64,000 bases of DNA from Octopus sinensis (Eukaryota), in the NCBI RefSeq assembly GCF_006345805.1, contig NC_043005.1:38440001-38504000 (forward strand). Reading direction: 5' to 3'. Below the pieces are notes generated by a model. It was not told the DNA's origin. It did not search any database and worked only from the letters and a program-made list of their open reading frames with translations. Position 1 is the stretch's first letter. Each line of letters starts with the position of its first letter. The position numbers and the translations under genes are program-made. Positions 11,387-54,573 of the stretch are shown here, piece after piece.

Positions 11387-11392
11387 TTTATT
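11387..11392 (-). promoter_or_regulatory. Candidate polyadenylation signal AATAAA for the polycystin-like gene
   Basis: Plus-strand tttatt at 11387-11392, about 70 nt after the stop and followed by T-rich sequence on the minus strand. Confidence 0.45.
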
Positions 11393-11461
11393 TCACGAAA
11401 AAAATCTAAAAATTGTTCAAAAAATTTCTTTATTTCTTCAGTTTACATTTCATTCCTCTCA

Positions 11462-11862
11462 TCAGTATATTTGGAAAATTACAATGATGACAACCTTTAT
11501 AGGTTCAAACAAAATAACATGCAAAATGATTCCGATCAAACTAAGTAAGGACCATTCTTTCACCGTGGGACCTTGTAGATCAGAGTTGCGGATACTTAGA
11601 ACGAGGAAACCAGTAACAATGATGACACCTATAGCAATTTGTAAATAACGTTTCGCACGATATGGGAGAACTTTATAGTCATCTTGAAAAAACACAGCCT
11701 CGTAATTAACGTAAAAATCCGCAAAATCGATCTCTACATCGAAGAAATGATAGGTGGATTGGTAAAGCATCGATAGTTCTCCTGGTTGTAGATTGAGTTT
11801 CTTCTCCATGGCGTCCATAAATGAGGGGATGTCATCTTCCTCTTCCGTTTTCGATGTAGTTT
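11462..11862 (-). CDS. Probable terminal exon of the same polycystin-1-like gene (TM4-TM5, then stop)
   Basis: Acceptor ttttttgtgtgtgcag|AA at 11862 (phase 1). Translation ...KVLPYRAKRYLQIAIGVIIVTGFLVLSIRNSDLQGPTVKEWSLLSLIGIILHVILFEPIKVVIIVIFQIY* matches the PKD1-family LP..TM4..W..TM5..(E/Q)P(L/I)KV signature. TGA at 11464-11462, with AATAAA about 70 nt downstream. Confidence 0.72.
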
Positions 11863-12087
11863 CTGCACACACAAAAAATATTACAGATTTAATTGTGAAA
11901 GAATTTATATTCAAAACTTACCGTATTTATTTCATGATTCTATTTAGAACCTTACAGAATAAGATTCAAATGAAAACACTTTCTGTGTACACACACACAC
12001 ACACACTCACACGCACACACACACACACACACACAACACACACACACACACACGCACGCACGCACACGCACACACACACACACATGT

Positions 12088-49836: not shown

Positions 49837-51729
49837 TATATGTATGATAACAAATTCTTAATATTGGATTTAACCCAAATGCTTTGAATAATGTATTACT
49901 AAGGAGCTAAACTCGAAACATATGTAGGTTTTTTTGAGTTTTCTATTGTATTTTTTTAGTATATTTGTATTTGAATCTTAACAACAAACTACGATACAAA
50001 TAAATTAACTATACATATTCAAGTCTCTATTTTCCTACTTTACTAATTTTACCTATATATATATGTATATAGGTATATATGCATATACATACATACATAT
50101 ATATATATATATATATATATATATATATATATATGTATGTATGCATGTATGTATGTATGTGTATATATAGTCAATTCAAACAAGAACAAGCAAGAAAAAA
50201 ATAAATAACAACCAGAGGACGTAGTACAACGTCTGTGTTATTGGACGTTCTTGGAAAGAAAAGAAAAGAAAGTGAATTTCACGTTTCGAGCGGAGATCTT
50301 CATCAGAAATATAGAAAAAGTCCAAAGAAGGGAAGACGGGGAAAGAAAATCGCCAACAATACACACGCAGTAACATATTGAAATGATCGGAAGGGAATGG
50401 GTAAAGAGAATGTTCTTTCTAAGACAAGAGAGTTCAACAGGAGGTATGTGTGTGTATGTATGAGTATGTGTGTGCGCGCAGATCTGTGTGTGTGTATGTA
50501 ATAATAGCACGTGTATGTGCGTATGTGTGTGTGTGATTGTGGTTGTTTATGTATGTGTGTGGTTGGACTTTGTATTGCTTAATGTCATATAGAAACATGT
50601 GTATATTTATGTATATTTATATCTTTCTATCTATCGCATATATATATATATACACATACATATACATATATAAGTAATATATATATATATATATATATAT
50701 ATTATATATATATATATATATATATATATATATATATATAACATACATATATATATATATGTATAAGTAAGTATATATATATATATATAATATATACATA
50801 CATATATATATATATGTATAAGTAAGTATATATATATATATATATATATATATTATATATATATATATATATATATATATATATATACATACATATATAT
50901 ATATATAGTTTCGTGGGCCTCTCACAGAAGCCTGACTTTTTCAGACAGATTATCGATTCAGTAAGCTATGCCTGCAAGTGCCAGGTCTCTATTAAAAGGC
51001 CCGGGTAACTTTAAGTCGTATGGAGCCGAATCAAACTGTTTCAAATATTACATGTAACGTCTACTAAATGTGTCGAGTACCTTTTGTTTCATTCGTCCAC
51101 TTACTCGTATAATATATAGTTGAATCAACCCTATTTATATATCTACTATATAGGTTACACATACACACACACTCCCACACATATAGTTATACAGGGCAAC
51201 ATCTTGTGTCTCATTTCCACAAAGTTTGAAAAAGCTAGGATTCAAAATCTATAAAGGAATGATATAGGATTAATATTTGCAGTTTGATGTTTGATGTGAG
51301 TAAATTAGTTGATGATGTGACAATATTCATATCGTTCACATCCAAATATTAATTCTTCTCTTCCTCTCGACATTAGCCAAAATAGTCTAATGAAACATTG
51401 TAACCTAAACACATGACATAAGTTTAAGAGAACAAATAATACAATTTGTGTGTGTGTGTGTGTGTGTGTGTGTGTGTGTGTGTATGCGTCCGTGCATGCG
51501 TGAGTGTGTATATGTCAACGAGAGACGAGTGAATGAACGAAAGTTTTGTTGACGTTTTATGTACTGAATAACAATTTAACTCAACTGTATATTACCTCGC
51601 GGACATAAGAGGAGACTACCTTACAGAGATGTTTGGAGAACGCGTCCGCATGTTGGGGACGCTTTTTACGCCCACGGAAACTTAAGTAATGTGCTGGCCC
51701 TTAGTCCCCCTGTTGCTTCTGATATATAG

Positions 51730-52188
51730 ATATTATATAGAGGGCATTACAATACAATAATGCCACACGTTAGGAGGGACTCTTAAAGTCAAAACTACCA
51801 AAATAAATAAACACATCGAACCGAATGCAACTCTTGAAGCGAGTCATTTAAAAACAGAAATTAGCTGCAAATCACTGTGATTTCATAATTAGTGCAGTAA
51901 TGCACTTTTTAATCCTCAGTGCAAGTATAATTCAAGATATATAACGAATGAACAAAATAAACATACCAGACGAACAACCATTGTATCCAACGTAGCATAT
52001 AAGAATTAAAAAGTGCATTACTACACTAATTAGGAAATCACAATGATATGCAGCTAAATTCTGTTTCTAAATGACTTGCTTCGAGAGTTGCATTCGGTAC
52101 GATGTGTTTATTTATTTTGGTAATTTTGACTTTAAGAGCCCCTCCTAGCATGTGACATTATTGTATAGTAATGCCCTCTATATAATAT
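51730..52188. mobile_element. MITE/foldback element with ~187-bp imperfect TIRs and 85-bp spacer
   Basis: atattatatagagggcattac...ttttaatcct (51730-51916) pairs with agaattaaaaagtgca...gtaatgccctctatataatat (52002-52188). Confidence 0.8.
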
Positions 52189-52397
52189 AAATAAATATAT
52201 TTAAGTGAAAAAATTGGTGGATTTTTTCTCTTATGAGTTTTTTTCACGCTAACTACTTGATAAATTCTTATAAAGATTTTATCCTATTTTAAAATTGTAA
52301 ATATATATATATATATATATATATATATATATATATATATATATATACATACAAACGCACACAGGAGCACACACATATATCTTACGCAATTACTGAC

Positions 52398-54573
52398 CTG
52401 TTCTTTGTGTTGATTCTCTGTGAAAGTAGATGCTGATTGATTCGTGTCGAGGTAACCGAGCCAATGTGCTACAAAACTCTTGACAAAGTTGACCACCACA
52501 CATGACTGCTGGTCAATGACAACTGATACATAATACATAGAGACAAGCGGTGTCTGCATTTCAAATGAATGTGTCATGATGTCTTCTATGCAATGAAATA
52601 CAGCGGCTTTTAATTTGTTTTCCAATTCGAATAAAATATTAAAGGTTATCCTCCTTTTCAAAAAGGGTCTTGAAAAAAGCTTCATATAATGAGCGTACCA
52701 TTGGTGATTTAATTCGGATTTTCCGCTGCAATATTCACATATTCCAGCTTCAAGTAAACAAATTTTCAGTTGATAATAAAGATGACTGTTAGTTTTAACA
52801 ACAGAAAGTATATTACTTAATAATCTTTGTCCCGTTAATTTATCACCTAATGTATTTTGGTTGTTTTGAACATAAACAGCAATTCCCCAGAATAGAGTGA
52901 GGCGGGCAAAAATAAACATCGGGATTATATTTTCTTTGTTGACTTCCTCTTCAGATTCTGCTATAACTTTTTCGCATAACATTTTAATTTCTGTTTCTGC
53001 TGAAAATTTTACATTTTCGTTTGGGAATTGTTCTTGTAAATAAAGTAACAACGCCTCCGAGAAAAATGAATCGATAATGTTATTCTCGACAGTATCAATA
53101 GCATTTTTGATCAGAACTTCGTGGTCGTGTACGCTCCTCTGGAAATATAACTGCAGCTCGTGAAAGTTGGGGTTTTGTGGGTCATCACCTTGTACAATGG
53201 TATGTATATACAGAAAGTTGTGCTGGGATATATTGGTGTCTATTTTATTGATCAATTCTTCGCTTGGATTTTCAATATAAACACAAGTCTCTAGAATATC
53301 CGAAGCATAAGAAAATATTTCCTGCAGCATGCTAGCATTCAATTTTTCATTTTCCCTGGCATATTTCTGTTGGTAAACGACATAAACTACTGCATCGATT
53401 AGTATTTCCAACGCCTTATCTAAATGATTAAACAAAGGAAAACATTGGTTTGGTAATTCACTGATTTCTGAAGTTTCTTTTAAATGTCGTGTTGATCCCT
53501 GAAATCGTCGACTGCAAAACCATGTTAATGAATTTACCATGTTAATGAATTTACGCTTGGCCGGAGAACTATCTCTTCGGACGGAGTCCGCATCGCTTAT
53601 TATTACTACTTCATCAATATGAAGTTGACTATTCAGTTGATTGCTTTTGTACCGGAGAATGCAGTGTATATAATAATGAAGCATTTCATATACGAGGGCC
53701 TTGTAGGTGTTGTAAACACTTGACAAATTGATTGTTCGCGAATAATTCAGATAAAACTCTCGGCACAAATGCAACAGAAGAAATATAGAATTAACGAATT
53801 TCTTAATTATTTTATCTCTGTATGAGTCAGTTAAGAGAGGCGGGAATTCGTTGTAGTTATCATCGAAACTCTTCAAACAATAACAACGTAAAGACAAAAT
53901 GGAAAACGCATATTCATTTAAATTAACAATGGGAACTATTTCATTTCTGAAAACAAAATAGTTGCGCGTTTCTGCTTTGTGTAAGTCTTCATTAAATGTA
54001 CACAGACAGCATCCATTATTCGGTTCACGGTGAAGCCACCAATGAGATATCAAATTTTCAGTCATGTCTTCCTTCCTAACACCGTTTTTCATGTGTTCTG
54101 TGTATACGTCATTAATAGCCATCTCACTGTTTGTATTATATATACCATCACATTGATGGATTCCTAGGTTACAAAAAATCAGATGTAGATATTCGGCAAA
54201 TTTATCATTTATACAAAAATGCTCATATTCCTCAAGTGGAAGTTTATGTGGAAAACGCTGGCCTCCATTTTTCAGAATTACATCTTTCACATTTATATTT
54301 CTAAGGAGATGCTCAAATATAAGAGGGATGAAAAATACCAGGAAATCGACAAAGATATATACGGGAAGTTTGTGACCTAAATTAGTAAATGCTTTTCCTT
54401 CGGTTTTCTCCAATGGCACCAACAGATTCATCAAATAATTAATTAACATAATCAAAGATATTATCAGGAATATAAGGAGGACGTTGTCATGAAAGCGGTA
54501 TGTACCGTGATGATGTTTAGTCAATGTCCAAGTATGATAGGTGATCAGTTTATGTAGTACGTCATGGAAGGAT
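52398..54573 (-). CDS. Large internal exon of a polycystin-1-like (PKD1L/REJ-type) membrane protein: post-PLAT segment, TM2, TM3 and a long cytoplasmic loop
   Basis: Acceptor ttttgttttttcag|A at 54573 and donor CAG|gtcagt at 52398/52397 (phase 0). The 2176 nt are stop-free and extend ORF 52284..54524. The N-terminal part SFHDVLHKLITYHTWTLTKHHHGTYRFHDNVLLIFLIISLIMLINYL ... LPVYIFVDFLVFFIPLIFEHLLRN resembles the PKD1-family pattern H.W...F..RL.....ML.N (TM2) followed by TM3 ending in LFR. Family call is by motif recognition. Confidence 0.72.

Follow-up and report, generated by a model that had tools for sequence, protein, structure and literature searches.

Polycystin-1 (human PKD1, PDB 6A70 chain B) and its relatives PKD1L1-3 and PKDREJ share a membrane-proximal arrangement, in which a first transmembrane helix (TM1) is followed by a cytosolic PLAT domain, a linker with an HxW motif, the TM2-TM3 pair, a loop, and the TM4-TM5 hairpin. 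The position of polycystin-1 in the tetramer with PKD2-type subunits is made by TM6-TM11, as in the 6A70 structure. The portion consisting of TM1-TM5 and PLAT is conserved and contains sites of disease mutations, and we know of no agreed function for it apart from the channel half. The same order of elements is encountered in the product of LOC118764827, a gene of Octopus sinensis annotated as an "uncharacterized protein". Its last three coding exons and its 3' end lie within a stretch of 64,000 nucleotides of contig NC_043005.1, referred to here as the window. The protein is probably a highly diverged derivative of the PKD1/REJ family, reduced to the membrane-proximal module and ending at the cytosolic end of TM5.

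Relatives of polycystin-1 without a channel are known from the sea urchin. SpREJ1, SpREJ8, and SpREJ9 have one TM, SpREJ2 has two, SpREJ7 six, and SpREJ10 none, and, like the octopus protein, SpREJ1, 2, and 7-10 are without the six-TM cation-channel module (Gunaratne et al. 2007, PMC1934368). Truncation of the transmembrane region is consequently an established evolutionary outcome in the PKD1 family. An earlier inspection of the same DNA, referred to below as the sequence-only reading, had proposed a channel-less PKD1-type protein; the loss of the channel half stands, but in principle it is not novel, given the SpREJ precedent. The sea-urchin proteins keep large REJ and GPS ectodomains, most of them with a signal peptide (PMC1934368), whereas the octopus protein has no REJ, GPS, or signal peptide, and no SpREJ protein has been described that combines precisely TM1-5 with a giant TM3-TM4 insert. 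What is new is the architecture within a known family; the gene itself is already in RefSeq as an uncharacterized prediction.

The closest invertebrate sequences collected, from PLAT to TM5, are the crustacean PKD1L2-like proteins (e.g., from Petrolisthes, Scylla, and Amphibalanus; P0042, P0047, P0069), whose TM5 carries F(E/Q)P(L/I/V)KV and resembles that of the octopus. Unlike the octopus protein, they have a GPS (PF01825) and a PLAT domain recognisable by Pfam, and their full-length members contain polycystin and PKD_channel domains. The crustacean models that end after TM5 (P0047, P0050) look like fragments. Within cephalopods, a survey of TRP channels reports one TRPP per species and leaves the LOC118764827 gene unmentioned (PMC13402157), and no paper turned up in a literature search for the locus names or the run accessions.

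Compared with the polycystin-1 family, the octopus protein is without a signal peptide, LRR, PKD repeats, REJ, and GAIN/GPS, as well as the TOP/polycystin domain, TM6-TM11, and the coiled coil, and it has five TM instead of eleven. The invariant WHDN of PLAT is replaced by TTSNN, and RPPRSRFTR by KHHHGTYRF; identity to polycystin-1 is too low for BLAST or Pfam. On the other hand, the octopus TM4-TM5 hairpin likewise ends in W…EP[IL]KV, and its charges fit the same topology. Because GPS, REJ, the eleven TM, the channel module, and the coiled coil are all absent from the present models, the protein is better described as a derivative of the core module than as a polycystin-1. It would begin with a short acidic N-terminus and TM1 and continue through a cytosolic PLAT-like beta domain, the HxW linker, and TM2-TM3 to a helical loop of ~718 residues, with TM4-TM5 at the end.

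Splicing of three exons on the minus strand gives 871 residues with 0 mismatches to the C-terminus of XP_036361806.1 (isoform X1). The exons and the introns between them, the latter from exon mapping, are given below, with a slash marking each exon border.

54573..52398, minus strand: large coding exon A, 2176 nt (725 codons and 1 base), acceptor ttttttcag/A, donor CAG/gtcagt; contains the post-PLAT linker, TM2, TM3, and most of the TM3-TM4 insert; tblastn match to XP_036361807
18051..52397, minus strand: intron, 34.3 kb
18050..18011, minus strand: micro-exon, 40 nt, ADQLIISEAVDDE and 1 base, ag/GCTGAC…GATGAAG/gtgaga
11863..18010, minus strand: intron between the micro-exon and the terminal exon, 6.1 kb
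11862..11465, minus strand: coding part of the terminal exon, 132 codons and 2 bases, acceptor gtgtgcag/AA; contains the end of the insert, TM4, and TM5

The splice sites of all three exons are canonical and their reading phases agree. In tblastn, the micro-exon corresponds to residues 839-851 and the terminal exon to residues 852-984 of P0001, both at 100% identity. The sequence-only reading had recognised two minus-strand exons with canonical splice sites and assigned them to one transcript. Both points agree with the spliced coding sequence, which is identical to XP_036361806.1; the 40-nt micro-exon between them had been missed. Exon A and the terminal exon are out of phase, so they cannot be joined directly, and the micro-exon restores the frame. 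The exon structure is corrected accordingly. Among the O. bimaculoides models, the older one, XP_014790441, lacks the micro-exon and, through the resulting frameshift, translates the terminal exon in the wrong frame (…KEQKIHRKRKRKIPSPHLWTPWR); the newer one, XP_052826930, has a different last exon, without TM4/TM5.

Isoform X1 comprises 1090 residues, the first 219 of which are encoded upstream, outside the window; isoform X2 comprises 984 residues and was retrieved together with the O. bimaculoides ortholog by a word-indexed protein search using the joined translations; both are free of Pfam domains. In assembly GCA_006345805.1, the gene range of isoform X1 extends over ~1.2 Mb for its 1090-residue product. 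Consequently, either the exons for TM1 and PLAT lie very far upstream, or distant exons have been joined by the model.

Hydropathy analysis gives five strong segments in the octopus protein, all conserved, in agreement with the five helices expected from the sequence-only reading. TM1 is encoded upstream. The segments located in the window are the following.

54539..54522, minus strand: YHTWTL, counterpart of the H-x-W-x-S motif after PLAT, by alignment to the PKD1-family profile
54485..54417, minus strand: TM2, NVLLIFLIISLIMLINYLMNLLV, hydropathy 2.47, aligned to PKD1 TM2 (…LSML.NAM…) by hmmsearch and hhalign
54368..54303, minus strand: TM3, LPVYIFVDFLVFFIPLIFEHLL, hydropathy 2.11, with basic LRNINVK after it, aligned by hhalign to PKD1 TM3, ending FRMSRSK
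54302..52398, minus strand: TM3-TM4 insert, bulk of the coding sequence, predicted helical, no known domain match
11647..11591, minus strand: TM4, YLQIAIGVIIVTGFLVLSI, hydropathy 2.32, aligned to PKD1 TM4 by the TM4-TM5 profile and hhalign
11554..11465, minus strand: TM5, WSLLSLIGIILHVILFEPIKVVIIVIFQIY, with the W…EP[IL]KV motif, EPIKV at 11506..11492

The H-x-W-x-S motif is invariant in the PKD1-family alignment A4, and a distant ortholog reads YHLWMF at this site. The counterpart of TM5 in human PKD1 is WLLSSSASFLASFLGWEPLKVLLEALYF, which was checked against PDB 6a70_B and is the best local match in both BLASTP and hhalign.

The relationship to polycystin-1 was assessed with region-specific profiles derived from PKD1-family sequences of vertebrates and crustaceans that span PLAT to TM5. 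A homolog search with human PKD1 yielded vertebrate fragments only, and one with a crustacean-type fragment yielded the invertebrate set. The human PKD1 segment used as a query is 100% identical to PDB 6a70_B over 1047 residues. Controls consisted of whole-sequence shuffles and of block shuffles that preserve the hydropathy pattern.

With the PLAT-to-TM3 profile, made from 19 sequences of vertebrates and crustaceans, the octopus protein obtains 19.3 bits, a value reached by 0 of 2000 shuffles; the shuffle maxima are 6.7 bits for whole-sequence (n=2000) and 15.4 bits for block shuffles. With PLAT alone, a soluble domain encoded outside the window, isoform X1 scores 13.7 bits, and 0 of 3000 shuffles score as high. 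For the linker with TM2/3, the corresponding exon of a distant species (L006, positions 9713-12037, ERZ21867824:ctg120315l) gives 12.8 bits, with 0-1 of 2000-3000 shuffles as high; this exon shares its acceptor position with that of the octopus and contains …LDYHLWMFGKYHHG…. When three orthologous terminal exons are scored with the TM4-TM5 profile, they give 17.3, 12.9, and 9.6 bits, values equalled by 0-18 of 2000 shuffles; the 12.9 bits belong to the window's own sequence, where the match is significant (0-14 of 2000). Profile-profile comparison by hhalign points in the same direction. In the N-terminal region, the probability is 86.8% (P = 4e-6) over 187 columns, from the middle of PLAT to the basic stretch after TM3, and for TM4-5 it is 69.9% (P = 4e-5) over 69 columns, from LPxW before TM4 to EP[IL]KV…LY. 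Crossed controls give P = 0.56 and 0.01, which is 250 to 130,000 times worse. Reciprocal searches of the PKD1 set with cephalopod profiles find the matching elements every time, and the TM5 profile always falls on PKD1 TM5.

Because three regions match independently and in the right sequence, and one of these, PLAT, is not a membrane domain, homology to the polycystin-1 family is likely on these profile comparisons. The two signatures named by the sequence-only reading fare differently. The TM4/TM5 signature with EPIKV is borne out on the window's sequence, whereas TM2/TM3, though found in the expected order, becomes significant only through the distant ortholog and the PLAT region. Similarly, the PKD1-family membership proposed there is recovered in order (PLAT, HxW-TM2/3, TM4/5) by the region-specific profiles, but not by standard tools.

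A number of results weigh against descent from polycystin-1 or against the gene model behind it. Pfam detects no relevant family in the exons, the RefSeq isoforms, the isolated PLAT-like segment, or the distant orthologs. At E<=10 there is no match to its PLAT, GPS, REJ, polycystin, or PKD_channel families, and PLAT (PF01477) remains unmatched when the domain is searched in isolation. A phmmer search of PDB sequences, PKD1 included, gives no match, and the terminal-exon and insert profiles also give nothing relevant there. Among 1.84 billion representatives, phmmer with the 984-residue protein finds no PKD1; each of its four matches is an ortholog or a fragment of this same gene. The best local BLASTP match to human PKD1, FEPIKVVIIVIF against WEPLKVLLEALY, covers 12 residues around EPIKV at E = 6. 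On the window's own sequence, the linker with TM2/3 scores 2.4-4.5 bits, which is equalled by 2-10% of shuffles and is not significant. The profiles are shallow (Neff 1.2-3.8), and hhalign probabilities stay below 20% when whole-length or broad alignments are used. With alignment A4, hhalign pairs octopus TM5 with PKD1 TM3; because this mispairing arises from most A4 rows being without TM4-5, region-specific profiles were used instead. Structure prediction yields no confirmation: AlphaFold2 with a 5-sequence alignment, from which PKD1 sequences were kept out to avoid circularity, gives a mean pLDDT of 34 and a pTM of 0.23, too poor for a fold search. Furthermore, the whole exon chain and the N-terminus are computational RefSeq models, the 3' end of the gene is inconsistently annotated across O. 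bimaculoides releases, and any function would be inferred from architecture.

Taken by themselves, the negative searches, the low probabilities with broad alignments, the TM2/TM3 score on the window, and the lack of structural support would suit an unrelated, lineage-specific multi-pass membrane protein whose EPIKV and HxW likeness arose by chance and through the composition bias of transmembrane segments. Such an origin is nevertheless unlikely. The three regions follow the order and spacing logic of PKD1, the PLAT match lies in a soluble domain, shuffles that preserve hydropathy rarely reach the real scores, and both the crossed controls and the reciprocal matches discriminate between corresponding and non-corresponding elements. 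The gene is real, and so is its truncation relative to polycystin-1, while the homology is plausible and weakly supported.

The coding sequence ends directly after TM5. EPIKV is followed by nine residues (VIIVIFQIY), and the stop is the tenth codon. The signals at this end are listed below.

11464..11459, minus strand: tandem stops TGA TGA, directly after …FQIY
11434..11429, minus strand: AATAAA, 28 nt past the stop, conserved in the related octopod contig L002
11392..11387, minus strand: AATAAA, 70 nt past the stop, not conserved in L002, which reads AAATAATC

The sequence-only reading had correctly placed the TGA and the more distant AATAAA; the closer AATAAA is present as well. Its claim that coding ends just after TM5 is supported by three further observations. 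Firstly, RefSeq isoforms X1 and X2 of O. sinensis both terminate at …EPIKVVIIVIFQIY. Secondly, the position of the stop is conserved in two other species. In L002, a genomic contig of a related octopod with ~77% nucleotide identity, the protein ends in …LQIYR (…EPIKVLIIVILQIYR), followed by TGA and, later, AATAAA; the site reads CGA TGA, so that the first TGA of the window corresponds to CGA in L002 and the two stops lie within one codon. In L001 (ERR3431203), which is 30% identical in the terminal exon, the protein ends in …IYQHYFKKGKI (FESLKVAAICIYQHYFKKGKI), with TAA and then AATAAA, and the stop comes 7 codons later. Thirdly, comparison of the terminal exon with L002 gives a dN/dS of 0.25 at a dS of 0.33, showing that this exon is under purifying selection. 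Between the motif and the stop, I.I[FY]Q.Y is conserved and aligns with the rest of PKD1 TM5, e.g., EPIKILMLALFYQIF in P0041. Consequently, the nine codons are coding sequence rather than intron read-through. The stop is located at the cytosolic end of TM5, and there is no C-terminal tail with a coiled coil.

The alternative is a full 11-TM polycystin-1-like gene, in which a donor before the stop leads to channel exons that lie further downstream or are too diverged to be recognised. As the sequence-only reading had stated for the remaining ~11 kb, no TRP-like exons are found there. When TM6-TM11 from the human and crustacean PKD1 proteins are compared with positions 1..11461 by tblastn, no match falls below E = 0.3, and Pfam finds no family, including PF08016/PF20519, in the three minus-strand frames of 1..11470. 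Neither does the protein itself match PF08016 or PF20519, the six-TM channel and polycystin domain of TRPP/PKD2-type proteins. Because this 11.4 kb is short relative to the introns of the gene (34 kb and 6 kb, within a model of ~1.2 Mb) and the exons are diverged, the negative result downstream is a weak one. The PKD1-like parts of the gene are themselves invisible to BLAST and Pfam, and diverged channel exons could escape in the same way. In addition, several crustacean and vertebrate models diverge after EP[LI]KV, hinting at an intron at this position elsewhere. Despite these points, an 11-TM gene is improbable, since the stop is kept within one codon in the related octopod and 7 codons later in a 30%-identical species, the nine codons from EPIKV to the stop are conserved as protein in alignment with PKD1 TM5, and both isoforms end here. 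The available donors are also poor. In the octopus, the position after the K codon reads AAG/GTTGTC, and the weak att/gtaatt site, which the sequence-only reading had considered as a splice exit, has its L001 counterpart in another phase.

In the crustacean and vertebrate PKD1-like models concerned (P0047, P0050, P0063, P0059, P0064, P0035), the sequence diverges or stops right after EP[LI]KV or QPVK(V/I). This pattern resembles read-through into an intron placed behind the K codon; it may point to a conserved intron position or conceal further channel-less forms.

The other end of the protein bears on whether a receptor half has been retained. In isoform X1, ~37 acidic or hydrophilic residues precede TM1, a strong segment that reads SPFVYCICSALFLMLCMLLYTGYVL; after it come the basic residues RTKSSRPILLRH and the PLAT-like domain. 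The charge pattern, acidic before TM1 and basic after it, obeys the positive-inside rule for PKD1 topology. This rule, together with the PKD1 arrangement, would place the N-terminus outside and leave PLAT, the insert, and the C-terminus in the cytosol. Neither isoform X1 nor the newer O. bimaculoides model, whose N-terminus runs 37 residues further upstream in frame, has an N-terminal hydrophobic segment that could serve as a signal peptide. The N-terminus has no Pfam match to GPS (PF01825) or REJ (PF02010), and the full models P0074 and P0075 are without any Pfam domain. When compared by hhalign with the GPS-TM1 region of PKD1 proteins, it aligns in TM1 alone, the N-terminus used here being a computational model outside the window.

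The sequence-only reading had assumed a retained receptor half with GPS upstream of the window and a GPCR-like or decoy role. A protein of this kind, with a REJ/GPS ectodomain before TM1-5 and an annotated N-terminus that is incomplete, would be consistent with the 5' exons lying outside the window in a ~1.2 Mb model, where missed upstream exons are conceivable, with the longer O. bimaculoides model, and with the REJ and GPS kept in sea-urchin channel-less forms (PMC1934368). However, two independent RefSeq models begin with the same short hydrophilic segment, and this segment is free of PF01825, PF02010, and anything resembling a signal peptide. The receptor proposal is accordingly given up here as quite improbable. 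A protein without GPS and REJ would not be a cleaved adhesion-type receptor, and nothing in the models points to an ectodomain for ligand binding.

Between TM3 and TM4 lies a sequence that the sequence-only reading had overlooked. The insert comprises ~718 residues, compared with ~225 in human PKD1, and contains 19 cysteines. Its identity to P0004, the corresponding exon of a distant species, is 25%. Searches of Pfam and PDB with the insert, both as a single sequence and as a profile, gave no match. AlphaFold2 predicts its secondary structure as mainly helix, with very low confidence. A hydrophobic stretch within the insert, IIPMFIFARLTLFWGIAVY (52928..52872), was considered as a sixth TM and rejected, as the distant ortholog is not hydrophobic there.

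Orthologs are present in O. bimaculoides, and as far as seen, the gene appears to be restricted to cephalopod-like genomes. The orthologous exons in L006 and L001 are 25-30% identical to the octopus protein. Given this divergence and the same splice start, the family is old. These comparisons also bear on the idea that the locus is a decaying partial PKD1-like duplicate or a mis-joined model, with no function of its own. Extreme divergence, the inconsistent O. bimaculoides releases, and the lack of literature on the gene would be in keeping with decay, but exon A is a single open frame of 725 codons in a genome of 35% GC, the same exon with the same start occurs in a species with ~25% identity, the terminal exon is under selection, and the splice sites are canonical with matching phases. 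Decay or mis-joining is therefore very improbable.

For the diverged derivative of the membrane-proximal module, some properties follow from what the protein does not contain. Without the TOP/polycystin domain, TM6-TM11, and the coiled coil, it would be unable to substitute for polycystin-1 in the 1:3 assembly with PKD2-type subunits or to line a pore. PLAT domains generally bind acidic lipids or partner proteins at membranes. The most likely role would be that of a cytosol-facing membrane scaffold, in which PLAT would attach to acidic lipids or partners at the inner leaflet and the helical insert would form a lineage-specific interaction surface. It is possible, although tentative, that the stand-alone cephalopod TM1-TM5 and PLAT, with their new 700-residue cytosolic domain, act as an autonomous unit, such as a lipid- or tension-sensing scaffold. 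If this is true, the TM1-TM5/PLAT module works by itself and is more than a connector between receptor and channel. A natural protein made of this module only, under purifying selection and kept at 25-30% identity, would support such autonomy. Structural and cell-biological studies would also gain a small and tractable construct, and the RefSeq "uncharacterized protein" would receive a family assignment.

The remaining features of the window concern its repeats. The 34-kb intron contains three LINE-type copies on the plus strand, antisense to the gene (35321-38056, 38691-41771, 44382-48272), each with an AP-type endonuclease (PF14529/PF03372) and RVT_1 in Pfam. As each copy is broken into several open reading frames (ORFs), they are probably decayed. 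In the 6-kb intron, a 99-residue ORF at 16402-16701 (plus strand) has a weak HTH_23 match (E = 0.002, under the Pfam cutoff) and may be a remnant of a DNA-transposon transposase. At 12020-12085, ~150 nt upstream of the terminal-exon acceptor, there is a long (GT)n/(GC-GT)n microsatellite. The window as a whole is AT-rich and repeat-laden, and its (TA)n, (CA)n, and (TATC)n-type repeats yield spurious ORFs (YIYIYI…, LSIYLSIY…).

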